A DNA stretch of 64,000 nucleotides from Penicillus capitatus (GCA_965649825.1 OZ287706.1:496001-560000), one strand, 5' to 3'; shown: positions 20,980-56,800, numbered from the stretch's first letter. A program made the numbers and translations. The notes: a model not told the origin generated them from the letters alone.

Positions 20980-22875
20980 CTATGTATGACACATACAAAT
21001 TGGATAGAACGAACATATGACATAACTGGCGTTACCGTATTCGGCGACGGGGCGATGTGTGTCGAGATACTTCTTAAATGGAATGGGCGGTCCCCTAGAT
21101 GGCATACGAAACCAATCATACCTGAATTCACCACGAGATTCAAAGTCGCTGCCCATCGCTGGATGCGTTACGTTGTCTGTAGGATCTTCTCCTTGGGCAA
21201 CAAATCTCCACATTCCTTGGTAAATAGTACATCCATGATCGCCGACTCTATTTCCGACTCTGAAATTTCCATCCAGCTTGTACTTCGCCAGGAAGTTCGT
21301 ATGAGCTGTTAGGACATCGAGAGGTTCGTTTGCCGACAGTGGAAAAGATAGAAACAAAAACACTTCGCCATCAATGCTCCACTGTCCTTCCAGGACATTT
21401 CCCACACGACTGCTGTTCGGTGACTCTTCAATCGACAACCAGCCACTCAGATCTGAATTCTCTTGCAGCCACAGCACCATTTTGTTGCGATACTCCTTTC
21501 CATTGGCAGCGAAGATGATCCCCTCTGCCTCCAAGGGTCCAGGACGAAGCAGGAAGTGATACTGAAATGGGGGCGGCATAATCTGCGGATACATGAAATC
21601 GCCGTACAAAGCAGTCCTCCACATCCTCTCGCCAACCAACTGAAATGCCGCATGGATGGATGCAACAGCGTGGAGATTGCCTTTATACTGATAGCTTCCA
21701 TTGGTGAAAGACAGTCTTCGACTAGAAACATCCCACTCTCCATTCACGATGATATGGCCATCCTCCCTATCGCGATTCTTTATCGCACAGAACATATACC
21801 CCTGTACACTTCTTTTTGGGTTAAGGCAGATAACAAGGTGGAAGAATTCCACAATGCCATTTGCTCCTTTAAGCTGACCATGTCCTTCATACAATCCAGG
21901 TTTCAGCAGTTGCTCGTCTTTGTTTGCCATTTGGCGACCCGCTGGCCCTTCGATGCCCAACATGGAGCGTACCATGCTTTTAACCGCGCGGTTTGGAATG
22001 AGTTCTCCGTATCTGATCTCGATCTTGGTTGTTGGGTCCTCTCTATGTCCACGGCGCATCCACTCCACAACGCTGGCTCTGTCATAGGTCACGCCCGAAT
22101 CCTTCAACACAACCGGATCTTTCATGACCTCCTTGCTGATGGGACAACAGAGATGTCCGCGAATCTCATTGCTCAGCTGCAAAGACGCGGCTCTCTCTTT
22201 CTCATCGATGGACTCAGAAACGACGTCGATGATCTGTTGTAGCTCGAATTCATGTTGTGTGTCTTTCTCTCTGCGCGCCTCTTCGATGTACCTCTTAAAC
22301 ACATCCAAGTCCTGTAGACGCGCTTCGACCGTGCTGGAGTGTTCTTTTATCATGTCGACAATGATAGATTTCATCTCCTCTGTTCCTTTTCGATTCTCGT
22401 GAAATGCCTTTTCCAGTTCCTCCCTCAACTTACGCGTCTGATTCGTGGACACTGCGACACTGTCGAATTTGGCTCGGCGCAAGTGCTCTGTGAGCTCGAG
22501 TATGCGTTCATGCATCTCTGTTGTAATGGGCAGACTCGCCAAAGGCAACTGATTCAATGCGTGTTCCAGTTTCTGAGATGCCTGCTTCAGCATCTCGCTA
22601 TTCTTGGAAGCGCACACCATTGCGGCGAGATATGTCGACGTGCAGCACCTCTCTATGGCTTTGTCCGCTTCGTTGACAGCGTCGAGCACAAGGTCCAGCG
22701 CCTCCAGCAGCGAAGGGTCATCTAACGGATGCTGCTCCAGGGCGTGTAAAAAAGGTTTCGTCTGTTCCGCCAACGAGGCAAGCGACTTACACTCTTCGAC
22801 ATTTGCCACCGCGTGTGCGGCATGTTTGGCAATGCCTTCGACAACCTTTAAGGCCGCACTTAAAATATCCATCAC
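20980..22875 (-). CDS. U-box E3 ligase with N-terminal MLKL/RPW8-like helical bundle and duplicated C-terminal beta-rich domain; intronless
   Basis: 631-aa ORF; U-box LCCPISKEVMKDPVVLKDSGVTYDRASVVEW; N-terminal amphipathic helices (NVEECKSLA...LEHAL). Confidence 0.85.
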   Translation of the reverse strand: MMDILSAALKVVEGIAKHAAHAVANVEECKSLASLAEQTKPFLHALEQHPLDDPSLLEALDLVLDAVNEADKAIERCCTSTYLAAMVCASKNSEMLKQASQKLEHALNQLPLASLPITTEMHERILELTEHLRRAKFDSVAVSTNQTRKLREELEKAFHENRKGTEEMKSIIVDMIKEHSSTVEARLQDLDVFKRYIEEARREKDTQHEFELQQIIDVVSESIDEKERAASLQLSNEIRGHLCCPISKEVMKDPVVLKDSGVTYDRASVVEWMRRGHREDPTTKIEIRYGELIPNRAVKSMVRSMLGIEGPAGRQMANKDEQLLKPGLYEGHGQLKGANGIVEFFHLVICLNPKRSVQGYMFCAIKNRDREDGHIIVNGEWDVSSRRLSFTNGSYQYKGNLHAVASIHAAFQLVGERMWRTALYGDFMYPQIMPPPFQYHFLLRPGPLEAEGIIFAANGKEYRNKMVLWLQENSDLSGWLSIEESPNSSRVGNVLEGQWSIDGEVFLFLSFPLSANEPLDVLTAHTNFLAKYKLDGNFRVGNRVGDHGCTIYQGMWRFVAQGEDPTDNVTHPAMGSDFESRGEFRYDWFRMPSRGPPIPFKKYLDTHRPVAEYGNASYVICSFYPICMCHT

Positions 22876-23599: not shown

Positions 23600-25070
23600 G
23601 GTCGGCCGTGCTGTTCAGTTGACTGCTGCTTTTTACTGTGCAGGTGGGATTAAAGCAAGAAGTGTGAAGAAAGTAGTCAGTGTGTTTTTTTGGCATTCTC
23701 GCCTAAACCCATCGTTTGTGTACCTTGTTCCCGTAGAACCCACTGCACGAGACCAAAGTAATTTCAGAACTCGTTGGCCGACTGAATCAATTCAAGCGAC
23801 AAAGGAGAACTTCCTGAAACGCACAGAGCACTTGGCAGCGAACAAAGAGGGACCTTAATGTTCCGCTTGTCGACACGAAAGAGAGATCCGCATTCGATCT
23901 GTCGGCGGTCAAAAGATAATTCATAGGCATTGCGTCCAAGCAGAAAGACCTTTTTCGGCGAAGGTGCAAACGCCGAGTGTTTTCCAATCCAGACTCCGAG
24001 GAAGAGACGACAGCGAAGACGCGGACCAAGAATGCTAGGAAGTCTATGCAAACGACTAGAGTGTGTACTGAGAACCCGCCTACCTGTAAAAACAGAACAG
24101 AGCTTGTTGTCGATCGAGAACTACGGTTCACGTTGCGCGACGACGGCAAACGCGACGGACACAAAAGCAATTCTTTAAAGCTCCGTATTCAGCGGCGGAA
24201 AGAATCGAAGGGCAAGAGGACAAAAGTTTTTGTCCGGGTGGTGACTCCGTCGTCGGCCCCCGAACTGGCTCGACGTTGTCCTTTCCCCGCCGTAACCCAT
24301 CCAACTCGGCGCGGGCTCGCCAGACACATCCGGGTCAACTCTGATGGGACTACCCTCCTCTGTGTCCGGCGCAGGAATCGAACCCCCGCGGTCGTACTTC
24401 TCGAACTGGCCAACTGCACCATCCGCATACGGGTCGATCCCCACCGTCGAGAAGTTGCCGACCCCATCGTATGCCCACAGGTGACGACTTCGTTGACGAC
24501 TCTGGTGCCACTTCGCCTCCTCCCGTGCATCTATGACGACTTCGTTGACGACTTTAACGCGCAACGACCGTGCTCATGTGACGACTCCTGACAACTTCTG
24601 CAAGATCCTGCCCGTTTCTGCGTTTCTCCTAATTCACCACGTCTCCTTTCACCTCTCGAGGCGTTCTCTCACAGACGTAGACTTCTACTTCGACGATAGG
24701 GAGGAGATTACGAGAGTGCACTTGGACTTCGTCGAGCTATTCTAGACGCATCTTTGCGAGTCTAACCGAGACTGATTTTTTCTGTGTGCTGCAAGCGGCG
24801 AATGCGTTCGTCCAGACACCAAAGAGGAAACCAGTGGTCCGAAAGTCGCGTTAAATGTCTCAAAAAGCAAGTGCAAACATCCTCGTCAAATGTTCTCGGA
24901 CTAAACAGTGAAAGAGAGAATGCATTGTCCAATAAGATACAGGAGAAGGCTGCATTAGACCGCAACGACGTTTGCTTTCTTGTCATCTGCGCCGTCCACC
25001 CAATTTGGTACCAAAAAAGGGAATGCAAACTTGATGGAAATACAGACTGCAGCCGTTGTCGAGCTTAGCT
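23600..25070 (+). pseudogene. GNOM/GBF-type ARF-GEF remnant, copy A (HUS-region end, linker core, start of Sec7)
   Basis: Homologous to 39730-41560, 46880-47970 and 55790-56800; decayed LCKRLERVLRTRLPV (FPVN region) and DFYFDDREEITRVHLDFVELF (Sec7 start); stops and frameshifts. Confidence 0.7.
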
Positions 25071-28087: not shown

Positions 28088-31000
28088 ATGGATCACGATA
28101 TGCGCGGCAAACGCAGACGTTCACCGCAGGGGTCATCCAGTAGGGTCACCAGTCGATCTCGGCACAACCCCGTCGAGACGACGGCGGCGCCGAATCTGCA
28201 ACCCATTCGGGACCTATTTCGAATCCTCAAGTTGTTCCAGGCGGCCCAGCCAGACGACGGGCCATACGATGAAGATTGGTACCACTCGGTGCTGCAACAC
28301 GCGCGGTCGGAAACGCCACAGGAGAAACGCCTGGCCGCGCGAATGCTGAGGAGGATGGCGCCGAAGTACCTGGGCAACATCGACACGACTGTCTCTGCGC
28401 TGATCGAAATCAGTTCCTGGCGACCGGAACTTCGGATTCAACGAGAGCGCAGTCTGTGCGAAGAGACGCGTCACGACGCGCTGACCGTCCTCGACGACAT
28501 GTTCGAGTGGACGACACCGGACATGAGGCCCCACTTCATGAAGATCATACCACATCTCTTCCGGTTAGCGACACAGCAGCGAAGTTCATGGTGTGATGTG
28601 TGTGACCGCAGGCAACTGTACGAGCTTCGCAGGCACATGGATCACTCACGCACCAGTCTCGGTATCCCCATCGATCTGACCCCCGAGCGCACCGAGTGCT
28701 GGATGATTCTGAATGCCCTGGCCAAAGGGCTGAAGCACTACGCAAGAGATATATTGTCCGAGTGCGTCCGCATCTGGACAGACATGTCCAAGCCTTATCA
28801 CGAGTCGGCCAATGTCTTTTTCAATCGCATCCTGCTGCCGCCAGAGACACCAGACAACTACAGTCTGGCATACGAGATTCACGCCTCCGACAAAGATCTC
28901 CTCAGATGGACGCTCAACATGCTCAACAGCGTCATCGAAAGTGAGATCAACGATGATGCGACACGACGTGGCTGACGCATCGTTTGGGTGACCCTTGCAG
29001 GAAGGCAGCACACACAGCATCCGGACTCTTCGTACATGAGACACGTATACAATCTCAGGAACGTCCTCATCCGCATACAGGAAGCGGAGAGGAAGAGAGA
29101 GCACGAAGGATGTCCAGAAGAGTCACACCTCGCCGCCCGCTCCGGGCCGGATGGACTTCGATCGCGCACGACAGCGGACGCCTACGCCGCCAAATGGGCC
29201 AGAGCTCGACGAAAACTGATAGAGGACAAGCAAGCAAAAGAGCTGGGACACGAGAGAGAAGGGCGTCCGAAGAAGTCGCTGCGTCATCGCGTCGAGTCTG
29301 GACCCAGTCTCCCGCAGGACCAACCCGGACGACAGTCCCTTCCGCCGACTGGGCCCGTGCCCTACGCCCCTCAGATCCCTGCCACACCCATCGATGATCC
29401 GGCGGTCATGTTGAGCAGGGATTTTGAGCGCGGTAGGTTCAGGAAGGCTCCCGGGGGATAATGAGTGGGTTGGATGCAGGATCCGCATCCTGTTCGGTGG
29501 CCGACCAGTACGGACCCGTCATCTGGTTCATGGCTCTGCCTGGAAACCTGAGAAACGGTGACATTAGTGATGCATGTAACGAGTATGGAAGGGTTTCCGG
29601 AGTTCTCTTTCCCCGAGTCTCGCTCGCCAGAGCTCTCGTCGTGTTCGATTCTGCAAAGTTTGGAACAGTGCTTTCCGATCAGTCCGATCTCACTTGTCAT
29701 TTCTAGGGAGGCCCTGAAGTGTTACCAAGGGCTGAAAGGGAATCCAGAATACGAAACGGAACGCCCAGCATTCATGCTGGTTCCATCCGTACGGTGCATG
29801 AGGGATGAGTACTACTCGGCCTTCCTGTGGATGGACGCATCGCATGCGCACTCAACGATCCACGATCTGGTCAGATGCTTTGACAGCGACGGCCGCCGTG
29901 CTCCGCAGCACATCATCAAAGTCGACGACTCTATCCGAAAGGGTGCCCCAACCTCACTGATGACGCTCATTCTTCAAAGAGTGATCTATCCGCAGGATTC
30001 TTGATCGAAGCTCCGACGATCGAGAAGATGACGGTGTGTTTGCGCGTCCTGCAGCCCGCGCTTAGGAATCTCGATCGTCGCTATCCTGTGAAAAAGAGAT
30101 CGAGGAACGATCTGCTACCTCGCGAAGAAGAGGCGAGCCAGGAACGCCGCGTGTCGCCGAGATCTCTGTCTTGGTCTGATCCTGCTGCCGACATCGGTCC
30201 TAGCCGCGAACGGCCTACACAGTCCCTCGCTGAAGGTGCCTGAGTCGCGAAGCATCGAGCATCGTTCTGCCGATGCATGCTCATCGATCGTTTATTCAGA
30301 TCGGGGATACGAATCACCGTGTTTTTAGGGAGGGTCAAGACATCGACTGTAAACACCAAAGACAGAAAGAAGGCAGATCGTGGATTTGCCAGAGAAGCCA
30401 AGCGCAAGAGTCCATCTGTATCCAGGGCGTCTGAATCTGACCCGGACACGTTTGATGCACCGACAGAGGCTACTACTAGAGACACTGCAGATAAGAAAGC
30501 CCAGAGAAAGCCGAAGAAATCCCGAACAGCAGAGGCGCCTGCAAGTCATTCGGCGCCTAAGTACAGAGAGACGAAGGCAGTTACCCAAAGTACAACGAAC
30601 CTGCAGTGTACTTATAATGGAAATCTCTTGTTCACTGTAGAAGAGGAGTCCAACAGTAAAGAATCTCGACCAAAGCCAGCAGACATTCCTAATCCGACTC
30701 CACAAACATCAAGTCCCGGAGAAGAAGTCGCGGTCGAGTCTTTGACAGTCTTATCGACCCAAGCAGAAGACAAACAACCTGTGCACGAAGAAGATGCATC
30801 TCCAAGCCATAAAGAAGACGTTCCGAATAAGTCTTCAACAGTCGTATCAGCTGCAGTGGAGCAGCAAGATGAAGATGACAACAACAAATCAAGTCCAATC
30901 GAGCAGCCCATGCACGAGTCCTTTGAAGCCCTGTCAAAGGGTGCGGAGAAGCCAGCGTCTGTAGAAGAAGATGTTTACTGTCCAAGCCATAGAGAAGGTG

Positions 31001-33960
31001 TTCCTGATGAGCCTTCGACAGTCCTGCCAACTGAAGAGGAGAAGAAGCAAGCTGAAGATGAAGATGCCGTTCCAAGCCCTAGCGAAGACTGTCATGCCGA
31101 GTCTTCGACAGTTCTTCCCACCGATGTGGAGCTGCAGCAACCTGTGCACTGCGAAGATGTCTGTCCAAGCCCTAAAGAAGAAGACTTCGATGCTGAGTCT
31201 TCGACAAGTAAGCCAACCGACGCAGAACAGCAACAACCTCTACCTGACAACGACCAATCATCCTTCCTCGTCGAAGAGCTTTCACGCAAATTATCCATAT
31301 CAGATTCATTGCCGACCGAGAAAAGCATGCAACATCGTCCTTTACATCAAGCCTCCTTGTGTGTGAGATATGTTCATTTACACGAATACGAGAGAGCCTG
31401 TCCTATCCTCACTGACGATCTTTTACACGGGTCACCAGATGACGCGCCAGAAGAAGCCGGGTGTGTCACACCAGAGCCTACCCGGAGACACTCAGGCCTT
31501 CTCCGTGATTCCGCGCCCGGATCGCCAGATGATGCACCACATGAAGCCGAGTGCGTCACGCCGGAGCCAACCAGAAGACACTCAGGCCTTCTCCGTGATT
31601 CTGAACCCGGATCACCAGATGAGGCATTAGACGACGCCGAATGTGTCACACCAGAGCCTACCAGGAGACACTCAGGCCTTCTCCGTGATACTGAGCCCAG
31701 ATCACCAGATGACGCGCCAGAAGATGCCGGGTGTGTCACACCAAAGCCTACCAGGAGACACTCGGGCCTTCTCCGTGATACTGAACCCGAATCACCAGAT
31801 GACGCATTAGACGACGCCGAATGTGTCACACCAGAACCTACCAAGAGACACTCAAGCCTTCTCCGTGATCCCGCGCTTGGATCACCAGATGAGGCATTAG
31901 ACGACGCCGAATGTGTCACACCAGAGCCTACCAGGAGACACTCAGGCCTTCTCCGTGATACTGAGCCCGGATCACCAGATGAGGCATTAGACGACGCCGA
32001 ATGTGTCACGCCGGAGCCAACCAGAAGACACTCAGGCCTTCTCCGTGATTCTGAACCCGGATCACCAGATGAGGCATTAGACGACGCCGAATGTGTCACA
32101 CCAGAGCCTACCAGAAGACACTCGGGCCTTCTCCGTGATACTGAACCCGAATCACCAGATGACGCATTAGACGACGCCGAATGTGTCACACCAGAACCTA
32201 CCAAGAGACACTCAAGCCTTCTCCGTGATCCCGCGCTTGGATCACCAGATGAGGCATTAGACGACGCCGAATGTGTCACACCAGAGCCTACCAGGAGACA
32301 CTCAGGCCTTCTCCGTGATACTGAGCCCGGATCACCAGATGAGGCATTAGACGACGCCGAATGTGTCACGCCGGAGCCAACCAGAAGACACTCAGGCCTT
32401 CTCCGTGATTCTGAACCCGGATCACCAGATGAGGCATTAGACGACGCCGAATGTGTCACACCAGAGCCTACCAGAAGACACTCAGGCCTTCTCCGTGATC
32501 CCGCGCTTGAATCGCCAGATGAGGCACCACATGAAGCCGAATGTGTCACACCAGAGCCCACCATAGGATTTTCACGTCGTTACCATGACGATGCACTTGC
32601 ACCTGAGTCGTCTGAAGCCGTTCCAGCCGAAATTGATTGCGTCACTCGACTGCGCCAACTCTACCAGTTAAGCCCCGTCGAGAATCCTGCACATGTATCG
32701 CCAGAAGCTGCACCAGACAAAGCCGAGTGTCTCACTCCGGAGCCCACCAGAAGGTATCCAACTCTTCACCGTGATCCTGTACCCGCTGTCCCAGAATCAT
32801 CTGAAGCCATACCGACGGAACTCGAATGCGTCACTCCAGTGCACCGCAGTCCATCGAACCCAGTGGATGATCCTGTCACGGAACCGTCCGAAGCCATGCC
32901 CGCCGAAGCGGAATGCCAAACGCCTGTGCACGAAGAGATCCATCAAAGCCCTATCGATGGATCTGCACACGTGTCGTCTGCTTGCGAGCAAGCATCTACT
33001 GTCAAAGAGGAAGCAGCAATGACGTACGAAGACTATCTGAACATGCTTGGAAAGAGACCTGTGCATGAGTCTGCGAATGATCTGCCGCTCGATGCAGATC
33101 GACGCAGTCCCGCACACGGAGGCTTCTCAGCAAGTCATGGTTGTGTTCTTGCGCACGAGTCTTCCAATGCACTGCCAGTCGAAGCAGCGCAACGGAGTCC
33201 TGCCCGTGGACACAACCATCCGAATCTGAGGACAACGTTCGTACCCGAGTCGTCTTCGTCGTCTCGCCCCTCTGGAAGAAGCGCACCAACAGACCCGATG
33301 GCTCCATCGGGTTCTGGCGAGACACCTGAAATCGAAATCATCGAGCCTCTCCCCTCGTACTGGACAGGCCATCCATCGAGTGGTGTCGGCAATGACGATG
33401 ATCTGATGTGCAATCTCGTCGCCTTCTCCATGTTCCAAGAAGACGGACAGGCGGATCCAGATGACTTCATTCGTCAGCAATCTCTTCTCCTGGATGCCTA
33501 CAGAAACGCTCGAGACGTCAAGGATCAGCAGCCCGTCGACAATCCTGCCCAGGTGACGCAGCCAAGCATCCCCCAGCAGCCTCCGGACGGTGCATGGACC
33601 GGCAAGATCTTCTTCCGCGAATGCGAAATCACTGGTGCCACTGCAGAGTGTCCCATTTCATTACCTCCTCAGCTCACGATCGAGGCAAGAGTTCCTATGA
33701 CATACGTTTTCAGATTGGCCGAAAACCCAGCGATCAAGAAAATCGAGCATCACTTCTTCCAGATCACTCCCACTGTGCCCAATCGCCTCTTCCACAAACT
33801 GCTGAGACATCTCAAGGGCCGTAAAGCCGCTGGCGTTGTGCACCTCCAAGGGTTCAACATCACTCTGTATCTCGTTCCTGCCTTGGAATCCAGCTGCATG
33901 GAACTAGGTGTCGTCGAGGATCCAATGAACAAACTGGTCTGTTTTTTGATTGCGACATGA
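28088..33960 (+). CDS. Large nuclear protein: API5-like N-terminus, RRM(s), acidic SP/TP-rich tandem repeats, C-terminal SPOC domain; multi-exon
   Basis: YHSVLQHARSETPQEKRLAARML (API5-like), IWFMALPGNLRNGDISDACNEYGRV..ARALVVFDS (RRM), WTGKIFF..LPPQLTIEARVP..LLRHLKGRKAAGVVHL..LYLVP (SPOC). Phase-compatible introns join the ORFs (e.g. ~29943-29996, ~30237-30328). Confidence 0.7.
31429..32598 (+). repeat. Coding tandem repeat: 13 x 90 bp (30 aa, GSPDEALDDAECVTPEPTRRHSGLLRDTEP) with a 360-bp higher-order duplication
   Basis: Visible directly: 31789-32123 is identical to 32149-32483; degenerate units continue to ~32950. Confidence 0.98.
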
Positions 33961-34254
33961 CGTGAGATGCTGTCGATGCGCGTGTCTGTTAAACATGTTG
34001 TTGTCTTTGATGTGACAGCTGTTCACACGCAACATTCATTGTTAATCGATTATAAATTCGACACGTCTTTGCGCGACATCGTTGTGACGAAGTTATCGCC
34101 GCGCTCTTCTCTGGCGTCTCTGTCGGGATCTCTCTCAATCACGCGTGCCTCCATCTGCCCTCGCACGGTTGACCTTCTGTCGTGTCTCACTGATTGTCAT
34201 GCACTTGAGATTCTGTACCGAGCCTGTCTTTTAAGTAATCCAGTGCTCTTTAGA

Positions 34255-35690
34255 CGGCACAACGGCAGCATGGCATGGAATGTCGCGATGCAAACTTCTG
34301 CCTTGATCTTAACAATCCGGGCCTCGTAAGCCTTGGAGGAAGGAATTGATCTCTCTTGCAAGGAAAGCCACTTCATCGTCTGCAGAGATCGCCTTTGCGA
34401 TACGACGTTTTCCAAAGCTGCCCACCAATTCGAGATGTTGTACTGTATCGTGGCCGCTGGTATGGTGGGTCGTCATCTGCCGCAAACCGCAACAACGTCG
34501 CTCATTCGAAGAGAGTGAATTGGTACTTCTGCTCTCCTTAATTCGGATGTGTTGCCGAATATCTGTTGAGTCAAACAACCCTGCATTATCCCTTCCAGTT
34601 CATTAGATTTGTCTTCTTCACTGGTTTCTGCTTGGGAGATACAATATTGGGAATCGAGAGTTCTTCTGATTTCAAATTCTGTCGCAGTGATCGTGATCCG
34701 CTCACGGCCGAAGCAATATGGGATATAGGGTATCAACGGGAGGCTAAAGAGCGAGCTAAAGATAATAGGAACAATCCAAGCCGTTGCTACACACCAAGAA
34801 TCGCTTAAAATGCAAACATATCACGGAAACATACGTTCGGATGGATATCGGACGATGGCAACAACTGTCAAGGGCACAACTACCGAGCAGCAGATTAGAG
34901 CCACAAAAAGATACTTGTGTCCTAAAAACAATGGCGACGAGATTCCCTCGATCTCAGTTTTCGAGAAAGGACAATTCAGTCTGACGATGTTTTACCGCCA
35001 TAAGACGCAGGAGGGATGTGTGCCTGAAGATAGGTCTTTCCACGTCTGACGACGCACGATTTTCCTGGTCCTTGTTTCCTCTCTTCCGCTCTCGAAACAC
35101 TGGACGAACAGGATAGCGTTCGAGTTCACCGCCGGCACCTCTCAATTCGCCTCACCTTCCTCGCCAGTCAGCAGTAACGCCCGATTGCGTTCTCTGCGCA
35201 TGAACCTGAGCGACACACCGAGTGTTCACTTGCAGGAAGCACCCGGATGACAAGGCAACGTACGATGACAATGTGATAGATCTTCTCTGTTCCAACTTCT
35301 CTCTCAAAGGACTCATTGTTCTGTCGAGTGCCATGGTGGAGACGGTTACACATTTCCTGAAAGCGAGAGAGCTAGGCGCGCGCGTTGGTCTACCTGCTGA
35401 GACGCCTACTTGTTTCTGTTTCTCGTAGATGTCTTGTCGGATGGAAGAAGCGGTGGTCTCCAGTGAAAGACATTTCACAGTGACTGGGCGTTTGTCTGAA
35501 AGCCTCTCGCACTAACACACGTCGACTCAGAGTGGAAAATGGATTGTCCGGACGGCAGAGCCACACCTCGTAGATGTATCCGACTGTCGAAAGACGGACG
35601 CGGAGGACGCGAAAGCGTCCGTCGATAACGGCACCTTCCGAATACATCATTCAACGTTTGCAAAGATGGGGATCGTTACTGTTGGAACAT
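34255..35690 (-). pseudogene. SRPK-like (CMGC) protein kinase pseudogene, copy 1
   Basis: GAVIDGRFRVLRV..VWLCRPD (N-lobe), frameshifted HCD/LKSE (catalytic loop), IFGN (DFGN-like), QHLELVGSFGKRRIAK; homologous to 49000-50420. Confidence 0.6.
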
Positions 35691-39729: not shown

Positions 39730-41560
39730 CACCTCTGGCTTCGAAGCGAACGAAACGTCTAGTGCTTTGCGTCAGGTCGTGTCCTACATGGACATGCCAC
39801 ACTCAGACATCCAGGCTACGGTAAAGATGCCCCCGTACATCACCGGTATCAGACTCTAAGCTTCCTCAAGCACCGCATCAGGCAGCTCGGCTTCCACTCG
39901 ACCGGAATACGATTGCTAAACATGCACGTCACATCAGATTCCGATGACGCTTCGGTGGACGCCGCACGTGAAGAAGGGAGAGGATCTTGATCATCTCTGT
40001 GGGAAATCTGCTTCGCCGCCCTTCAGGACATCCAGAACTGCAGAAAGGTCCTGATTAATATTTTCAGCCTCTCACAGTATCTTGTTGCATTCGGGAAAGT
40101 GGCGGCTGTTCTTTGATAGACTGATAGACATCCTCCAACGTCTTCCGTGGAGTATCCTCATCCCTGTTCATCCTTGTGTCATACGCGTGAACTGATCTAG
40201 TATCATTTATGACTCCAGGCGCGTGCAGATCGGTATTCGGCAGGGTGATCGAATAGGCCAAAGTGTGCACCGAATCCTCGCTCTTGAAGGGGGAGTCTTG
40301 ATAGTCGAAGAAGACCTTGCTGAACTTGCTCAATACACGGATAGCGCATTCTCTCTTTGTTGCATTGCTTACCCTGAGAGCGTATGGCAAGGATATTTAC
40401 GCTTACTTGTGTGGACATACAATTCGACTTTCAAGTTTATAGTTGTTCCTCTTTGGTATCTCGCGGACGCATTTGCCACTTTGCAACAGACACAAAAAAG
40501 CGCGTGTGACCTACTCGCATGAAAACCTCCAAAAATAGCTCGACGCAGGCCACTTTTATGGTCTCTCCTTCTATTGCTGAAGAAGAAGTCATCGCGTGTC
40601 AGAACACACCTTTAGGAGTGAACGGAGACGTTTTGAATTCGGAGAGATGAAAGAACAGACAGGATCCTGCAAAGGTTGTCAACAGTCGTCGCGTTCGTGC
40701 GTCTTTAGGCGTCAGAGTCGCTGTTTAAGAACGGCAGTCAGACTTCAAAGTCGTCGACAAGAGTCGTCAGCAAAGTCGTCACGGACGCACGGGAGGAGGC
40801 GAACTGTCACCAGAGGCGTCAGCGAAGTCGTCACGGGTGGGCATACGATGGGGTCGGCAACTTTTCGACCGTGGGGATCGACCCGTATGCGGATGGTGCA
40901 GTTGGCCAGTTCGAGAAGTACGACCGCGGGGGTTCGATTCCTGCGCCGGACACAGAGGAGGGTAGTCCCATCAGAGTTGACCCGGATGTGTCTGGCGAGC
41001 CCGCGCCGAGTTGGATGGGTTACGGCAGGGAAAGGACAACGTCGAGCCAGTTCGGGGGCCGACGACGGAGTCACCACCCGGACAAAAACTTTTGTCCTCT
41101 TTCCCTTTGATTCTTTTCGCCGCCGAATACGGAGCTGTAAAGATTTCCTTTCGTATCCGTCACGTGCGCCACCGTCGCGTATCGCTCAACGTAGTTGTTT
41201 GCTCGTTTGATCCTACTCTGTTCTTAGTTTACAGGCGTCCTGTTGTATAGCAACTTCCGGGGTTAGACGAATCAATGCGAAGACGTAGTTCTAGCTGTGT
41301 CGCCTCGTTGAATGCGCTCGCAGCCGTGTGTCCCCTGAATGACCGTAAAGCGAGTTTCACGATATCTTTTTTGCGCAGCCTGCCCATGCTAGTATGGATG
41401 GTTTCCGGCATTCAACTTCTTCTCTTATCCAAACGAGCAAACGCAGTCCTCGAGAAGAATCTCGCTACAGCAGCAGAAAGAAAGGATTCTGGCGTATGAT
41501 CAATCAACAGACGTAGTAGACGAAGAAGCTTTTCGCCTGTTGCCGTTAAAAGCCACGGAA
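39730..41560 (-). pseudogene. GNOM/GBF-type ARF-GEF remnant, copy B (longest: pre-Sec7 region, Sec7, HDS1 start)
   Basis: IRVLSKFSKVFFDYQDSPFKSEDSVHTLAYSITLPNTDLHAP..TLEDVYQSIK (Sec7), SSPFFTC, GIFTVAWMSEC, LDVSFASKPEVLLN (post-Sec7), VARFFSRT; many stops and frameshifts. Confidence 0.8.
40870..41125 (+). repeat. Homogenised ~260-bp dispersed-repeat core (other copies: 24190-24450 on -, 47020-47275 and 56400-56650 on +) with Pol III A/B-box-like motifs
   Basis: Only a few differences among the four copies; TGGTGCAGTTGG 40894-40905, GGTTCGATTCC 40931-40941, palindrome GGACAAAA-AC-TTTTGTCC 41080-41097. Confidence 0.85.
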
Positions 41561-42935
41561 AGACCACTTTTGCCTCACAGACTGAGGGAAAAAGATGTCG
41601 ACAGTGCTACTCGTTTCGCGTGCACACGTGACTACCGGCCACCAGAGGTCGGACAGTGAAGGAGAAGTGTGGCAAACCGCGACGCTTTGGATATGGGCCT
41701 CATCGAGGCTCCACTTTGAGCCAGCTGCAGTCGCCACGCAAGCCTGCTCTGTGGATTCTGCTTAAACGGATGCCCGAGACAAAGATCTGTTATCTTTGTA
41801 TCACGCTGGAGTGCGATTGCTGTTTCTTTGTCCTCGCACGATGCGTTTCGAATCTGAGATGAACGAGCTGCCGGCAGTCTGAGACGCGAGAATACCGTTA
41901 GGCATCCAGAAGAGACGCTTTTCTGACCCCCCAGTTGCTCATGCTGCTGTACTTGGCCGTTTCTTAGCGTCAACTCCGAACATCTACCCCATTCTGCCGA
42001 TCGAGTGACGACTGAGATGCATAGCTGTCAGTGGATGCCTGCTTTGAAGACATGTCTGCACTCGCTTGACCTCTTGGTGCTCGCCTTCTGTCATCTGGAT
42101 GTTCCCGGATCCTCCTCTCATCGACCTAGACGGCCTTGGACCCACCATAGGAATTCCGGCCAGTGGGCGAAATGAAGTGCGGGTAGGGCGTGCTTTAGCT
42201 TTAATTCGCATCCTCCGTCTGCGAGGCTTCTCTGACTGCGGTTGAGTCATGTCACTTAGGAGATACCTTCTTTCTGACTATGAGCCTTTCAACAGGCCGC
42301 TTCCTGTCCCTCGAGTGATGATGCCGACGCCGGCAGAGTATTCATCGCGAAACAGTGCGAATCTGTTGAGATTACCGTCTGCTCGAGACGTCGTGTCACA
42401 ATACACGACATGGTGCGTTTCTCATGCCTGCTCGATTGAGGGATAACGTGGGCGGGTAGACGACGCACGCTACTCGGATTAGATTTCCAAGCGAACTGCC
42501 TTGTTTACGTGCATACCCCTGCGAGCGGCATCCGGCTGAATGAGAACTTAGAGCAGGCCCCGGCGTCGGACGAAGAGTGAAGACCACGGCAGCTGCCGAT
42601 CGTTCACATTCCTGCAAGGGAATGGAATGGACTGCCGATCTTACAGCCGATCTTACAGTAGAAGGTCCACTTTGATTTCACTGAGGACGGGAGGAAGACT
42701 AAAAGCCTAGCAGTGTATGTTACGGACAGGCACATTGAGAACGTGCCCTTTATACAGCCATAACCACACGGTTGGCATTCTCTTTAAAAAAAGCACGACG
42801 GCGGCCATGGACGAAATGTGTGGCCAGAGACGTCGAGAGATTCAACGGAACAGCAATCGAATGCAATGTACGACCGTCCGACACGTCAAAGGCATAACAA
42901 GCGCGGTAATCGATCGTGGAAACTGTCTCGTGCGG

Positions 42936-45909: not shown

Positions 45910-46879
45910 CTCAGCACTAAGATCCGCCGCCTTCGACACAACTGGCCGTTCTTCATCACTCGCGTTTTTTTGTCTTCCATTATTACTGTCTACCGTTCAT
46001 GCATAGTCTCGGCGTCCTTAAAGGATGCAGACACACACGCATCCTGGAGTTGGCTTCATCTGGGTGATTTGTATGCTGGCAAACGATCTAAAGAACACCA
46101 CTTCACCATGCAACCATCAAATCGAACACGCAAGCCTTTCCTTGAGGCAACTTTCCATGTAAAAGAGGATCGATCTCGCATAAGCCGAATCATGTAAAAC
46201 GCTTCACTTTCCTGCTAACGAAGCTCATTTTGTGTCCAGCTTCTGTGTCTCCACGCGGATACCAAAGTGGGCATTTGATGTGACTGCTATCGCGAGCTAT
46301 CGATCCGCTGTGCTCTCCGTCCCTTCTTCGATAGGAAAGACGACTTCTAGACGGAAACGTGCGACAGAGAGATTTCTTCATGAACAGTAGGAATCCAACC
46401 CAAAAAATGCAAGAGCGCATCACTCTACTAGTACAAGTGCAATTTTTAGTATGGTACGATAAGTTGTTTCATGTTGGACGATAGAAAAGACAGAGATGAG
46501 GCCAAAGTGTTCAGTGAGTATGTTTTTTAGAGAGAGAAACAGATAATGATCGACAAAGGTGTCGCAACATGCCGATGACCTGCCGAGAGATGGAGCCGCA
46601 TCCTCATTGCTAGATTCTATTCATTCTCGGCGATGCTGGCTTCGTAGAACTAAGAGTGTGAAGCAAAGTACTGTGTGATGATAAGTTAGAGTTAAGAAAA
46701 TACTATCTTTAAGAAAAAGAACGTGCTTTAAAGCACATAGCAGGGGGTGGTATTCGTCGCCATCTCTAAAGATCCAGCGTCGTTGCGGTTGCACGGGACG
46801 GAACTCGTCAGCCAACGGGCTGATCACAGAGCCACGAAGCCGATATAGACGGTCACCAGAAAAGAGTCGTCACATGAGC

Positions 46880-47970
46880 ACGGTAATCAGGATTCAAAGT
46901 CGTCGACAAGAGTTGTCAACAAAGTCGTCACGGACGCACGGGAGGAGGCGAACTGTCACCAGAGGCGTCAGCGAAGTCGTCACGGGTGGGCATACGATGG
47001 GGTCGGCAACTTTTCGACCGTGGGGATCGACCCGTATGCGGATGGTGCAATTGGCCAGTTCGAGAAGTACGACCGCGGGGGTTCGATTCCTGCGCCGGAC
47101 ACAGAGGAGGGTAGTCCCATCAGAGTTGACCCGGATGTGTCTGGCGAGCCCGCGCCGAGTTGGATGGGTTACGGCAGGGAAAGGACAACGTCGAGCCAGT
47201 TCGGGGGCCGACGATGGAGTCACCACCCGGACAAAAACTTTTGTCCTCTTTCCCTTTGATTCTTTTCGCCGCCGAATACGGAGCTGTAAAGATTTCCTTT
47301 CGTATCCGTCACGTTCGCCGCCGTCGCGTATCGCGAAAAGCAGTTTTCGATCGACAGCAAGCTCTGTTCTGTGTTTACAGGTAGGCGGGTTCTTAGTACA
47401 CGCTCTAGTCGTTTGCATAGACTTCCTAGCATTCTTGGTCCGCGTCTTCGCTGTCGTCTCTTCCTCGGAGTCTGGATTGAAAAACACTCGGCGTTTGCAC
47501 CTTTGCCGAAAAAGGTCTTTCTACTTGGACACGGTGCCTGTGAATTGTCTCTTGGCTGCCGACAGATCGAACGCGGATCTCTCTTTCGTGTCGACAAGCG
47601 GAACATTCAGATCCCTCCTTGTTCGCTGCCAAGTGCTCTGTGCGTTTCGGGAAGTTCTCCTTTGTCGCTTGAATTGATTCAGTCGGCCAACGAGTTCTGG
47701 AAATACTTCGGTCTCGTGCAATGGTTTCTACGGAGACAAGGTGCACAAACGATGGGTTTAGGAGAGAATGCCAAAACAGCTGTTAAAGAACAGAACGTTG
47801 GCAGCTTACTCGTCTTTCCACAGGCCCTGGTCTGTGACCGATATCGCACTCGAAATCTTCGGGAACAGATCATGGCGATTTTAGAGAACGCCGTAGATAC
47901 ATACTGCGTCAGTCATCTCTATAGAAGCAACTGCGGTGAGTCTGCGGTCATCTTCATCCAGGAGGTGTAA
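46880..47970 (-). pseudogene. GNOM/GBF-type ARF-GEF remnant, copy C (pre-Sec7 region plus core)
   Basis: 46894-47335 is nearly identical to 40745-41185; 47340-47720 is about 90% similar (estimated by eye) to 23760-24150; GSLCKRLERVLRTRLPVNTEQSLLSIEN. Confidence 0.75.
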
Positions 47971-48321: not shown

Positions 48322-48999
48322 CGTGCGTGATCGACGTCAAGAACTCGCTTAAGCATCGTTGATCGAACGGCGGCTGTTTATTCCAGTCGCGTCTTTGGCG
48401 ACTTCTCGCACAAGGTTTTTTGCCCGATACATCAACGACGCTGTGCGAGGATTCTTCATGTTGGATACAGTCGGTGACATTCCGTCCTCCAGAACTACAT
48501 TTTTGTTGAGGTGGTTTCGGATCGGACCGGCAAAGCATCTGTGAGTGACAGACGCGAACAGGATGGACCCGTAGACATATCGTCAAGCAGACAAAAAAGA
48601 ACGCACCAAACGCAGCTACGACGGGTTGCTTATCTAGAATAAGTGGCCGCCAACCTTTCAAGCGTATCAGTCAGTGAACGTGCAGTACATGTTTGCAACC
48701 CTTTACATCCGTTCCTTCCGACGTCCAAATAAGAGTGAGTGTCGCTAACACAAAAACGCTAACAAAGTGTTAGACAATGAATGAGAAACAGCAACGATAC
48801 ATTGAAATATGGCAATCATGTGACGAAATAGATGGCAAATTGGAGCTGTTGTGATTCGATTGGGAAGGGAGATAAGGTAACGATATGCACCTGGCTAGCG
48901 AATATTAATGCGGCATGTATGCGTGTAACAGGCATAATATGCCATCGACGAAAAGGAGGAGAGTCAAGGACAAGTGATGTTGCAGAATCATTAGCGGCA

Positions 49000-50420
49000 C
49001 TTCGCCAGTGTAATGAAATGTCTGATGCAAGGCATCAGCCTTGACCTCAATAATCCAGGACTCGTAAGTCTTGGAGGAAGGAATTGATCTCTCCTTCAAG
49101 GAAAGCCATTTCATCGTCTGCAGAGATCGCCTTTGCAATACGACGTTTTCCAAAGCTGCCGATCAATTCGAGATGTTGTTCTCTACCGCTGTCGCGGCTA
49201 CCGTAGAAGGTTATCTGCCGGTAAACGCAACAATACCGCCCATTCGAAGACAGTGAATTCGTACCTGTGCTCTCATTAGTTCGGATGTATTGCCAGATAT
49301 TTGTTGAGTCAAACAACCCTGCATCACGCCTTCCAGTTCATTAGCACTGTCTTCTTCACTGGCTTCTGTTCGGGAGGAGATGCAGTATTGGAAATCGAGA
49401 GTTCTTCTGATTTCGAACTCTGTCGCGGTGATCGTGATCCGCTCACGGCCGAAGCAATATGGGAAATTGGATATCAATCCGAGGCCGAAGAGCGAGCTCA
49501 TGATAATAGGAACAATCCAAGTCGTTGCTACATACCAAGAGTTGCTTCAAAGATGAGGGCATGTTTCATAATGTACGTTCAGATGGAAATCGGATGATGA
49601 CGCCAACTGTCAAGGGCACAGCTATCGCGCAGTAGATGAGAGCTACAAGAAGATACAGGCATCCTACAAACAATGGAGACGAACTTCCCTTGATCTCAGC
49701 TGCCAGCGAGGACAACTCACTGTAACAGTGTCTTACCGCCGCAGGACGCAGGAGGGACATGTGCTCCAAGATGGGTCTCTCCACGTCTAACGACGTATGA
49801 TTTTCCTGGTCCTTGTTTCCTCTCTTCCGCTCTCGAAGCACTGGACGAACAGGATAGCGTTCGAGGTCATAGCCGACACCACTCGAGTCGCCTCACCTTC
49901 CTTCCCAGTCAGCAGTAACGCTGGATTGCGTTCTCTGCGCATGAATCTGAGTGATACACTTGCAGGAAGCACCCGAGACTAGCAAGGCAACGTACGAGCA
50001 CAATGTGATAGATCTTCTCCGTTCCAACTTCTCTCTCAAAGGACTCATTGTTCTGTCGATTGTTACAGTGAAAAAGGTTACACATTTCCTGAAAATGCGA
50101 CAGATTGGCGCACGCGTTGGTCTTCCTGTCGAGACGCCTACTTGTTTCTGTTTCTCGTAGATGTCTTGTCGGATGGAAGAAGCGGTGGTCTCCAGTGAAA
50201 GACATTTCACAGTGACTGGGCGTTTGTCCGAAAGCCTTTCGCACTAACACAGGTCGACTCAGAGTGGAGGATGGATTGTCCGGACGACAGAGCCACACCT
50301 CGCAGATGTATCCTACTGTCAAAAGACGGACGCGGAGAACTCGAAAGCGCCCGTCGATAACGGCACCTTCCTCATACATGATGCAGTGTTTGCAGAGATG
50401 GGGATCGTTATGAGAATCTA
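49000..50420 (-). pseudogene. SRPK-like protein kinase pseudogene, copy 2
   Basis: Direct repeat of 34255-35690 (roughly 80% identical by eye); YEEGAVIDGRFRVLRV..EVWLCRPD, REQHLELIGSFGKRRIAK. Confidence 0.6.
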
Positions 50421-50699: not shown

Positions 50700-52650
50700 T
50701 GCGCCAATGGACACGGAGGCTGTGCCTTTGCCATCATCATATCGCACTTCGAACAAACGCTATGTCTGTTTACGGCATTATCTCGTGTCGATAGATATAC
50801 ACTAATTGCCAACATACAATCCAGCATCGCAGATAAGCCAGTCGCATCAGATAAACGGGCGAACTGTCCCGTTCGGCGACGTGATCGATTGATTGTCGCG
50901 AATAACCACATCAAACGGCGCGATTGATGATTTCGAAGACGTGTATTTGCAGTTCCGATGATTGATGCACCGATTCCTTCTTCAAACTGTCTTACGATCA
51001 GGTTCTTACCGGTCATTATGAGAGAGATTCTTAGATCCAGGAGGGGCTTCGTCAGTGGCATGTCGCCCATGTTCTCCTGGTGGTTCGTACATCATTGGTT
51101 AGGTTCTTAGCGTCTGTGTGCATTACGTTGTTTTAAAAGTACGTGCAGGCTCGGTTCGAGACAGTTATTTCATTTTGCTTCTCTCCTGAGTATACAGAAG
51201 ATGTCTTTGCAGTATGCTGCAAATCGAAAGTAGAGTCGGCCTTCTTGGACCAGCGTTCCTAGTTCATCAATTGGCAGATCGTCTTGGTAGAACAGTTGTC
51301 TTCGTTTCTCTCCCAAGGATTCGCACTGGAGAAGGTGGTCCCTTGTTTCTCTTTGCTTCCCACACCCTCTGCATAATCCGGTGTCTATCTCGATTTCCTA
51401 GTTTCGTAGGTATTCCAACGTTGGGAGATGTCCCGAGAGTAATTGATTGATGTGTGAGATAGCTGCCCTGGTCCAGCTCAGATCTTGGAACCATGGACGT
51501 TGGTGGATACAATATTTCCAGTTCAATTGTTTCAAGAGAGTACCCCGATCACTGTTGTGCCATTGCCTCGAGGCTTGCTATCCATAGAACTGCCACGTCT
51601 TGTCTGAATCGTCGTCGTCCTACTCGGGTTTTGGCAAGTGTCGAAATCGTCTCCGCCGAGCCGTTCCTGTCTAATGGCACCTGGGATTCTTCGATACGCA
51701 TTAACTCAGCTATGAGGAAATCCGCGGACGTGAGATGAGTAGCTCCATAAGAGGGTTGATTGAAATCTTCAGCCGGTGCTGTTGACGAGACGGCGTGAAT
51801 CACTAGCGTCCACATGGCAAGGACAGATAGAGGATGAATATGCGCAAGTTGGGTGACTGCCTCCAGTGAAACTGTGGTGAGCACTCCGCTAATTGCGATT
51901 CCGGCTTGTCTAGTAATACCGTCCAGTGCTTTTTGGTTAGAAAAATACTGACACGATGGGCCCACATCGGACTTGCCTAGAGTATCATCGGTTACACACT
52001 GAAGAAAGAGTCTTCGAATGATCCTTGGCTCAGCGCCCCGGCAGATACGGGTCAGCTTGCGGATTGTTTTTAGTCGTTGCAAGCTCTTGGTGACTCTTTC
52101 TTGAATGTGTTGATCCAAATAGAGTTTCGAGTCTAGTAGGATTCCCAGGTACTTCATTTTCGGCTGAAATATGATGTTCTCTCCAAAGACACTTAGGAGA
52201 GGAGAAGAAGAGACAGAGTTGCGTCGGAAGATTGTGCCTGAGTCTTCGAAGCGTTGAGTTGTATTTCACGCTTGGAGCACTATGCTTCATTAGTGCAAAT
52301 GGTCTGTTGCAGGCGTGTGCGTTTGTCTTCAGTATCCAGTGTGTAGAGCAACAAATCATCTGCATACAAGAGCGGATGCACCTCTGGAGGATTTCAGCTA
52401 CAATGTTTTTTGAGTAGATGGTATAAAGTGTAGGGCAGAGGGGACTTCCCTGGAACAGTCCTCGTTCTGGTTGGAACTGATGTCGTTCTCTCTGTGAGCT
52501 TGTCAACGCTGATCCCTTGTGTGTGATGTTCCTTCTGGTAGTGGTTTAACCAATGTATGCGATTGTGCTCGAACGATTCGAACTGGTTTTGTAATTGGAC
52601 TGGACGAAGAACGCTAAAGTTTAACGGTCTGTGACGACGAGCAAACAAGC
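50700..52650 (-). mobile_element. Decayed, 5'-truncated non-LTR retrotransposon (LINE) reverse transcriptase
   Basis: GLFQGSPLCPTLYTIY, LYADDLLLY (YADD 52355-52366, reached by frameshift), KYLGILLDSKL..HIQ; possible decayed CxxC knuckle near 50750. Confidence 0.85.
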
Positions 52651-55789: not shown

Positions 55790-56800
55790 TGAATCACGGA
55801 AGGCGGCCCGGAAACCCAGGTGAGTGGAAAAGGCGAGGAATCAAAGGTCCTTTAAGTCCGACGCGGCTCTTTATTGTAGCTTATTGGAGAGCGTATTTTC
55901 TATTTGTTGCATTGCTCACCCTGAGAGCGCATGGCAATCGTGTTTACACGTACTTGTGGGGACATCTAACTCGACTTTCAAGTTTCTACTTGTTCCTCTT
56001 TGGTATCTCGCGGACGCATTCGCCACTTACAGCACACAGGAGAAATCAGTCTCGGCCAGACTCGCAAAGATGCGTCTAGAATAGCTCGACGAAGTCCAAG
56101 TACACTCTCGTAATCTCCTCCCTATCGTCGAAGTAGAAGTCTACGTCTGTGAGAGAACGCCTCGAGAGGTGAAAGGCGATGTGGTGAATTAGGAGAAACG
56201 CAGAAACGGACAGGATCTTGCAGAAGTTGACAAGAGTCGTCACACGAGCACGGTCGTTGCGCGTTAAAGTCGTCAGGAGAGTCGTCACGGATGCACGGGA
56301 GGAGGCGAAGTGGCACCAGAGTCGTCAACAAAGTCGTCACGGACGACGCGGATACGGCGAATACGGTGGGCATATGTTGAAGTCGGCGCGTTCTCGATCG
56401 TGGGGATCGAGCCGTATGCGGATGGTGCAGTTGGCCAGTTCGAGAAGTACGACCGCGGGGGTTCGATTCCTGCGCCGGACACAGAGGAGGGTAGTCCCAT
56501 CAGAGTTGACCCGGATGTGTCTGGCGAGCCCGCGCCGAGTTGGATGGGTTACGGCGGGGAAAGGACAACGTCGAGCCAGTTCGGGGGCCGACGATGGAGT
56601 CACCACCCGGACAAAAACTTTTGTCCTCTTGCCCTTTGATTCTTTTCGCCGTCGAAAACAGAGCTGTAAAGATTTCTTTCGTATCCGTCACGTGCGCCGC
56701 CGTCGCCTATCGCGAAAAGCAGACTTCGCTACACAAACCGAACTCCGGTTGTTCTGTGTTGACCGAAGTTTTTAATCACACATTCAGGTGTTCTGTATGG
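55790..56800 (-). pseudogene. GNOM/GBF-type ARF-GEF remnant, copy D (core plus Sec7 start)
   Basis: 56020-56340 closely matches 24500-24830; 55890-56030 matches 40350-40490; core 56400-56650 matches the other three copies. Confidence 0.75.

Follow-up and report, generated by a model that had tools for sequence, protein, structure and literature searches.

What is the short sequence that recurs, almost unchanged, at four places in this stretch of DNA? An earlier note on the same stretch (64,000 nt, here called the window) described a core of about 260 bp that resembles a structured RNA or SINE of RNA polymerase III (Pol III) type, antisense to a remnant of an ARF-GEF gene, and proposed that it may have inserted into the ARF-GEF copy before this multiplied. 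Here, the copies are compared with each other, with further copies from the source alga and a close relative, and with known RNA families and mobile elements. The core emerges as a non-coding unit in its own right, and its anatomy suggests, tentatively, a family of small RNA genes.

Results

Four copies share a near-identical core

Self-comparison of the window recovers the four near-identical copies described previously: copy A at 23688-24941 on the minus strand, copy B at 40339-41235, copy C at 46859-47776, and copy D at 55875-56763. Their features are collected in Table 1. Over positions 40883-41094 of copy B, the six pairs of cores show 1-3 differences in 212 positions (98.6-99.5% identity), whereas the alignable flanks (40728-40882 and 41095-41196) are 72.9-94.9% identical, in agreement with the earlier observation that the flanks have diverged more than the core. 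Fisher tests of core against flank identity give p = 1.5e-2 for B/C, the youngest pair of window copies, and values between 1e-11 and 1e-18 in each of the remaining five. The contrast is confirmed as real and lies far beyond chance. The listed motifs, i.e. the A-box-like motif, the B box, the T-arm-like hairpin, the stem, and the palindrome, are all found where the earlier note had located them. Copy A lies ~1.35 kb upstream of a U-box gene and in the same orientation as the gene.

Table 1. Features of the repeat copies and their immediate context, in window coordinates.
Feature	Position	Strand	Sequence or basis
Copy B, highly conserved core, putative ~211-nt RNA	40883..41093	+	Column identity and motifs
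Copy B, A-box-like motif	40894-40905	+	TGGTGCAGTTGG
Copy B, B box	40931-40941	+	GGTTCGATTCC
Copy B, T-arm-like hairpin CGCGGG/CCTGCG	40925/40940	+	Motif position
Copy B, arms of 11-bp stem	40944 and 40987	+	CGCCGGACACA / TGTGTCTGGCG
Copy B, helix with covariation support	40945-40954 with 40987-40996	+	GCCGGACACA/TGTGTCTGGC
Copy B, terminal palindrome	41080	+	GGACAAAAACTTTTGTCC
Copy B, T4	41090-41093	+	3´ end of core
Copy B, 5´ part, moderately conserved, subfamily-specific	40837..40882	+	74-80% identity between subfamilies
Copy B, upstream AGTCGTC motif array	40684..40832	+	AAGTCGTCR at 40748, 40773, and 40825
Copy B, downstream region, weakly conserved, T-rich	41094..41235	+	Homologous in most copies and in both species
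Copy C, core	47032..47242	+	5´ part 46986-47031; motif array 46865-46981
Copy D, core	56412..56622	+	5´ part 56366-56411 (L3 type, preceded by a 23-nt insert); motif array 56235-56338
Copy A, core	24222..24432	-	5´ part 24433-24478; motif array 24483-24586
Remnant of a Sec7 domain, its C-terminal half (neighbouring sequence outside the element)	40064..40390	-	Pfam PF01369, E=1.6e-14

The core is conserved as nucleotides and is independent of the ARF-GEF fragment

The earlier note was right that the core lies antisense to a genuine Sec7 fragment (Table 1). This Pfam-detectable remnant flanks only copy B, on the opposite strand and 450 nt from the core; a Sec7-like flank is seen in the window beside copies A, B, and D only, and the stretches beside A and D are short. 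Such a neighbourhood raises the question whether the core is ordinary coding or linker sequence of a GNOM-like ARF-GEF gene, kept for the sake of the protein, all the more as each of the four window copies has one minus-strand frame that stays open across the core. This is hardly credible. The indels between subfamilies are of 1, 1, 1, 1, 2, and 5 nt, so that the core cannot be coding, and the frames switch between subfamilies, the type-2 open reading frame (ORF) P0016 being pieced together from two frames of its type-1 counterpart. The frame with GIEPPRSYFSNW contains stop codons, and Pfam finds no match in the ORFs that cross the core and nothing ARF-GEF-like (N-terminal HUS/Sec7_N) to the right of copies A and C. 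Constraint is thus shown to act on nucleotides and not on any reading frame, and this frame-independent conservation refutes the coding explanation. It also bears out the suggestion that the core is a separate, non-coding unit.

Occurrence outside the ARF-GEF context had been proposed as a check, and at more than 10 other loci the element is indeed present with no ARF-GEF flanks beside it. At the loci outside the window, no Sec7 sequence was found near the copies. Since most copies thus lie at loci without a Sec7 remnant, the element is independent of the ARF-GEF fragment. An insertion into an ARF-GEF copy before its multiplication is not needed to account for these data, with a Sec7-like flank only at A, B, and D and nothing ARF-GEF-like right of A and C. 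On the minus strand, an "LPVN" overlaps a conserved motif, CTCTGTTCTGTGTTTACAG followed by GT, that could equally be a splice signal.

A dispersed family in two related algae

The window sequence belongs to an ENA metagenome contig of 91 kb (ERZ25074695:ctg339056_22x). It runs colinear, at about 98.2-98.8% identity, with a portion of a longer contig from this sample (954 kb, 41x), and is therefore either a second haplotype of that portion or a copy that arose by very recent duplication. The source alga (sample ERZ25074695, species 1 in the following) is taken to be an uncultured ulvophyte-like green alga, and sample ERZ26696514 to represent a close relative (species 2). An EF-1alpha fragment in the window (5622-6401) is 98% identical to a protein on an ERZ26696514 contig; its best named matches are from Ostreobium (85%), Bryopsis (83%), and Cladophorales (82%).

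An ORF predicted by the gene caller (P0001) spans copy C, and when the core was translated in two reading frames and compared with protein collections, 16 related "proteins" were retrieved and then another 5, all of them ENA entries. The contigs behind these ORFs gave loci L002-L009 and L013-L015. In the 275 kb of DNA collected in this way, a profile search detected 21 full-length copies with a unit of less than 1 kb, which are spread over at least 13 distinct loci and occur in either orientation. It detected no fragments, truncated copies, or decayed copies. Three of the 21 (L8a, L8b, and L13) are from species 2, and at least 10 copies lie on one 954-kb contig. Called ORFs that cover the core number only ~30 in a collection of 15 billion proteins, all from genomic contigs of ENA assemblies, which suggests a copy number in the tens. 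Among 1.84 billion representative proteins, HMMER found 13 matches only, again all from ENA. A 21-mer scan of JGI metagenomes for relatives yielded three chance matches only, and none were found in viral contigs and prokaryotic genomes.

Several copies are found ~1.3-1.5 kb 5´ of a U-box gene that has the same orientation. The segments that hold copy A and L9b, each together with a U-box gene, are paralogs of one another; their U-box genes are 70% and their cores 92% identical, and the spacer cannot be aligned. L3a and L8a adjoin the same GST gene in species 1 and species 2, respectively, and are positional orthologs; identity between them amounts to 85% in the core, 77% in the GST region, and 32-58% in the flanks. 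The copies L9a/L9b and L14a/L14b form convergent inverted pairs, their members ~7 kb apart on either side of a U-box gene. The related locus L005 contains an LTR retroelement that has a reverse transcriptase.

Conservation is delimited sharply and extends weakly into the flanks

Column identity was computed across 13 independent copies. Its mean is at most 0.62 and mostly 0.3-0.4 before 40837, about 0.7 in the 46-nt 5´ part (40838-40882), 0.8-0.99 from 40883 to 41092 with a single dip to 0.62 at 41063-41077, and 0.53 and falling after 41093. A conserved block of the kind reported earlier thus exists, but its limits are 40837-41093 rather than 40870-41125, and at the 3´ side it stops short of the position given. 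Pairwise identity of the cores is 95-100% among 13 type-1 copies, 99-100% among five type-2 copies, 92% between the two types, 89-93% between L6 and the rest of species 1, and 78-87% between species 2 and species 1, which shows that the core is conserved between the two species. Between subfamilies, which carry different 5´ modules, the 46-nt 5´ part is 74-80% identical, the upstream 118 nt 25-68%, and the downstream 100 nt 25-50%.

The flanks are diverged yet homologous. Recognisable stretches, e.g. CTTTTNGCCGCCGAAAAC downstream, are found in most copies and in both species, as is the motif of CTCTGTTCTGTGTTTACAG and GT ~185 nt downstream of the core. An array of AGTCGTC units precedes every copy in both species, with a unit length that varies (13, 22, or ~60 nt). 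Within the window, all 11 occurrences of AAGTCGTCR are placed just upstream of the four copies, where 1.8 would be expected. The arrays are confined to one side, and their orientation is always that of the core.

The arrays are reminiscent of subterminal transposase-binding repeats, and the core could in principle be the end or an internal part of another type of mobile element (a DNA transposon with subterminal repeats, a Helitron, or a gene-fragment capturer) carrying the Sec7 piece seen beside three copies. The palindrome near one end of the core and the convergent inverted pairs around U-box genes would be in keeping with such an origin, which we nevertheless consider improbable. There are no terminal inverted repeats within a copy and no transposase nearby, the arrays are one-sided and follow the core, the palindrome is not conserved, and the window pairs A/B-D are divergent rather than convergent. 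Moreover, homology between L009, L014, and L007 continues beyond the inverted pair, which indicates segmental duplication and not insertion. An LTR or terminal-repeat arrangement of copies B, C, and D, and an inverted-repeat transposon at L9a/L9b, were both rejected, since what lies inside and outside these arrangements is ordinary genes that have been duplicated. An ORF at 51549-52157, considered as the tail of a reverse transcriptase, has no Pfam match.

Copies exchange sequence by gene conversion

Copy D and its allelic counterpart L2c share a background of 98% identity, and the block in which they differ is identical to L3b, including the 23-nt insert. This block spans the 5´ part and the core and is an ectopic gene-conversion tract. 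Within a genome, paralogous cores are 95-100% identical versus 85% for orthologs; that paralogs are closer than orthologs is the signature of concerted evolution. In species 2, the cores of L8a and L8b are 99% and their flanks about 80% identical. Near-identical cores within drifting flanks are the outcome of ectopic gene conversion together with purifying selection, and since orthologous cores are only 85% identical, much of the identity within the genome comes from gene conversion and not from selection.

Signals of Pol III type

The B box GGTTCGATTCC at 40931 is a perfect match to the consensus GGTTCGANNCC and is kept in all copies; it is identical in most, altered at an N position in type 2, and carries one change in L6. 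In a type-2 Pol III gene, an A box would be expected 30-60 nt ahead of the B box and some 10-20 nt past the start of transcription. The A-box-like motif TGGTGCAGTTGG, spaced 37 nt from the B box, departs from TRGCNNAGTGG by one mismatch and one extra base. High conservation begins at 40883, 11 nt upstream of this motif, and collapses past the T-run at 41093. The core ends in CAAAAACTTTT, and a second T-run follows in several species-1 copies. In all species-1 copies, T4 is present at the end of the core and T-rich sequence after it. In the three species-2 copies, CTATT replaces the T-run and the next run of four or more T is found 30-85 nt downstream; termination at the core end is therefore not conserved.

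Two details of the anatomy proposed earlier need amendment. The terminal palindrome with its T4 is present in the window but does not characterise the family, being broken in L3b, L6, and L7/L9a. Copies B and C have a further T4 at 40862, just 5´ of the proposed start of the core at 40870, and this argues for a Pol III start downstream of 40862. The proposed arrangement of A and B boxes and a T-run is otherwise supported by the perfect B box, the A-box-like motif, and conservation boundaries that fit a transcript of ~210 nt ending at the T-run.

Resemblance to a known tRNA was sought in several ways. ARAGORN at default settings finds no tRNA in the core, and a "tRNA-Ala" reported at 80% stringency is poor and represents background, as 12% of random window segments score likewise. 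No cloverleaf can be drawn for the core. Rfam 15 has no match in the window at gathering score, and at E<=10, the region 40650-41250 gives four chance-level matches only, the best from the tRNA clan being a T-arm of 9.5 bits. Motifs of H/ACA and C/D-box RNAs, Sm sites, telomerase templates, SRP RNA, and MRP RNA were looked for by eye on the basis of their consensus, and none is conserved across copies.

Is the element then a tRNA-derived SINE or other retroposon, in which Pol III transcripts of master copies were reverse-transcribed by a LINE enzyme and inserted, and in which near-identity reflects recent amplification? It is a short interspersed repeat of ~210-260 nt found at many loci and in both orientations, of a length within the range of SINEs (mean 253 nt; PMC3531059), with a B box, an A-box-like motif, a T-arm-like hairpin, and subfamilies that have different 5´ modules. 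In L3b, L6, and L7/L9a, close similarity stops right past CTTTT, and L005 has an element encoding a reverse transcriptase. A and B boxes are, however, an indication only according to the SINEBase authors, who define a SINE head as at least 60% identical to tRNA, 5S RNA, or 7SL RNA over at least 60 nt (PMC3531059). Judged by proxy from ARAGORN and the Rfam tRNA clan, the head is not tRNA-like; the collected loci contain no tRNA genes of the alga itself, and the comparison is by proxy only. An A-rich or simple-repeat tail and a target-site duplication were looked for, and none were found. Homologous, if diverged, sequence upstream of the putative start and downstream of the T-run is shared among copies and species, and a retrocopy should not carry this. 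In one and the same pair of copies, the core can be 99% and the flanks 30-80% identical, which recent insertion cannot explain. At least one locus (L3a/L8a) is orthologous between the species, all copies in the 275 kb are intact, and the copy number is apparently in the tens, judging from the ~30 database ORFs. On this balance, a SINE is unlikely, and the corresponding suggestion in the earlier note is not upheld.

Predicted RNA structure

Folding of single sequences does not reveal unusual stability compared to shuffled sequences (z = -1.4, -1.0, and -0.8; +0.6 for the minus strand; none significant). RNAalifold on 13 distinct sequences (alignment A3) predicts 73 pairs, most of which never vary. 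The 10-bp helix GCCGGACACA/TGTGTCTGGC (A3 positions 113-122/157-166) has two compensatory pairs, GC to UA in L8 and AU to UA in L13, in addition to exchanges of GU and GC, and is 99% paired. The G·U pairs exist on the plus strand only and would be A·C mismatches on the other strand. True covariation is confined to this one helix. Variable columns make up 47% of unpaired versus 23% of paired positions (p=4e-4), for a structure predicted from the same sequences, and substitutions and indels concentrate in the loop of a GGG-NNNN-CCC hairpin and in the loop of the 3´ hairpin, which corresponds to the dip in conservation at 41063-41077. A long helix predicted by RNAfold, GGGGATCGACCC with the B-box region, was dropped because, by eye, it is broken by substitutions in L6, L7, and L9.

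These observations also bear on a DNA element without relevant transcription, either a TFIIIC-bound boundary or regulatory module or a tract that was homogenised by ectopic conversion confined to the core after divergence of the flanks and is preserved without a function of its own. Gene conversion is directly seen, orthologous cores fall to 85% against 95-100% for paralogs, the fold shows no unusual stability, conservation covers nearly all positions in loops and stems alike, and the recurrent placement upstream of U-box genes in the same orientation would suit a regulatory module. Conversion alone does not predict the sharp drop in conservation at the T-run, however, and between species the core retains 79-86% identity compared to 32-58% for the flanks and 77% for the GST region. 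Compensatory and G·U-specific changes in one helix, and the enrichment of variation in loops, likewise speak against this alternative, and we regard a purely DNA-level element as rather unlikely. In decreasing order of likelihood, the alternatives are a classical SINE, a DNA-level element homogenised by conversion, and another transposon.

Discussion

The reading that we tentatively prefer, at somewhat short of an even chance, is that the core is the conserved body of a dispersed, concertedly evolving, multi-copy family of small non-coding RNA genes of Pol III type. The family may have an ancient tRNA-related or SINE-like origin, with copies that now behave as maintained genes rather than as decaying insertions. 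Transcription, the polymerase, the RNA ends, and any cellular function are inferred. In such a gene, TFIIIC would recognise the internal B box and the A-box-like motif upstream of it, and Pol III would start ~10 nt before the A box, near 40880, and stop in the T-run at 41090-41093. The product would be a plus-strand RNA of ~210 nt with a long central hairpin formed by GCCGGACACA and TGTGTCTGGC and further hairpins with freely varying loops. The upstream AGTCGTC array is probably an upstream promoter or enhancer element. Several points weaken the RNA-gene reading, namely the lack of an Rfam match, the ordinary fold stability, covariation in a single helix, the imperfect A box, the failure to form a cloverleaf, and the CTATT of species 2. 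Furthermore, conserved sequence and the motif array reach upstream of the proposed start, which is also compatible with a DNA-level element or with a longer transcript made by Pol II.

Gene families that evolve in concert, such as those of tRNA, 5S RNA, and U-snRNA, offer a close parallel. They, too, have near-identical bodies at many loci, flanks that diverge fast, conversion between copies, and conservation that ends at a T-run. The present element differs in that it matches neither these nor any other Rfam family, and at ~210 nt it is much longer than a tRNA. Vault RNA, the EBER and VA RNAs, and BC1 are made from type-2 Pol III genes that combine internal A and B boxes with conserved upstream motifs; these RNAs are 90-170 nt long and have the B box nearer the 3´ end. 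The element has no sequence similarity to them, and its upstream element is a variable tandem array. On the other strand, the upstream motif contains TGACG, which we take to resemble a bZIP/CRE half-site. A further comparison is with Cassandra and Helenus/Ajax, which are non-autonomous retroelements with small-RNA-like promoters in their repeats (PMC10886601). The likeness lies in a small-RNA-like Pol III promoter inside a larger repeated unit; the element differs in that there are no paired direct terminal repeats around a primer-binding site and a polypurine tract, and copies B, C, and D enclose unrelated genes.

One possibility that goes further, and that we consider doubtful, is an undescribed class of structured Pol III RNA of ~210 nt specific to one lineage of ulvophyte algae. 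It would comprise at least 15 selectively maintained loci with a hybrid promoter, made up of A and B boxes and the TGACG-containing array, and its copies would be kept uniform by gene conversion that is possibly RNA-mediated.

The locus is a clean natural example of ectopic conversion among dispersed copies, in which two haplotypes can be compared directly. A practical consequence concerns annotation: the ~30 public "proteins" (P0001, P0003-P0017, and P0138-P0141) are open frames across a non-coding element, and hence an annotation artefact. To our knowledge, the repertoire of non-coding RNA in green algae outside Chlamydomonas is almost unknown, and the element, if transcribed, would add an uncatalogued multi-copy small RNA to it. 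It would then also be a case of a sequence with a promoter of tRNA type that has turned into a maintained gene family instead of a decaying SINE.

Surroundings of the core

About 30 predicted "proteins" in public protein collections (P0001, P0003-P0017 and P0138-P0141 among them) are annotation artefacts, merely open reading frames running on either strand across the GC-rich, non-coding core. Some 185 nt downstream of the core lies a conserved motif, CTCTGTTCTGTGTTTACAG/GT, that is common to both species. On the plus strand it would pass for a good 3´ splice site. Alternatively, the minus strand could be read as ...LPVN followed by a GTAAAC donor. Further downstream, at about 1.3-1.5 kb from copy A in the window and from copies L9b and L14b on other contigs, are paralogous U-box genes in the same orientation as the core, with coding regions that are approximately 70% identical as against 92% for the associated cores.

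Positions of features in the window and at related loci on other contigs
Feature	Location	Strand or copies
EF-1alpha exon	window 5622-6401	
U-box (PF04564) genes	window 20980-22872	minus
	L007 14436-15503; L009 14696-15811; L014 4754-5818	
CTCTGTTCTGTGTTTACAG/GT motif	~24080-24102	A, minus
	~41213-41238	B
	~47362-47384	C
		also L3a, L5, L8a, L8b, L15
1227-aa open reading frame	window 30277-33960	
90-nt tandem repeats	window 31338-32627	
Direct segmental duplication	window 34247-35678 and 48988-50410	
Block distinguishing copy D	window 56340-56411; L002 19470-19530	D
1.96-kb insertion	L002 2903-4865	
Site lacking the insertion	window ~41727-41729	
Gag-protease and RT-integrase pair	L005 4710-9157	

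The EF-1alpha exon has its nearest named relatives in ulvophycean green algae (Ostreobium, Bryopsis, Cladophorales), the group from which the metagenome contig probably derives. The long open reading frame harbors at least 12 tandem repeats of 90 nt (30 codons) that are 83-89% identical and contain ...GSPDEALDDAECVTPEPTRRHSGLLRD... Two 1.4-kb stretches that have no relation to the core form a direct segmental duplication (84% identical), evidence of repeated duplication in this region.

Haplotype differences and retroelements

What sets copy D apart from its allele on the 41x contig is a block with exactly the sequence of the distant copy L3b, a 23-nt insert (GACGACGCGGATACGGCGAATAC) included. 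The block is a recent tract of ectopic gene conversion in which the two haplotypes differ. The same 954-kb contig carries a 1.96-kb insertion missing from the window haplotype, an insertion polymorphism. The inserted sequence has direct terminal repeats of 271 bp (99.6% identical) and resembles a small LTR-type element; its single called ORF (406 aa) had no match in Pfam. At another locus, L005, an LTR retrotransposon encoding gag-protease and RT-integrase (RVT_1, rve, Asp_protease) lies directly 5´ of a core copy and cuts into the upstream array of that copy. Retroelement reverse transcriptase is thus present in the genome of the alga.
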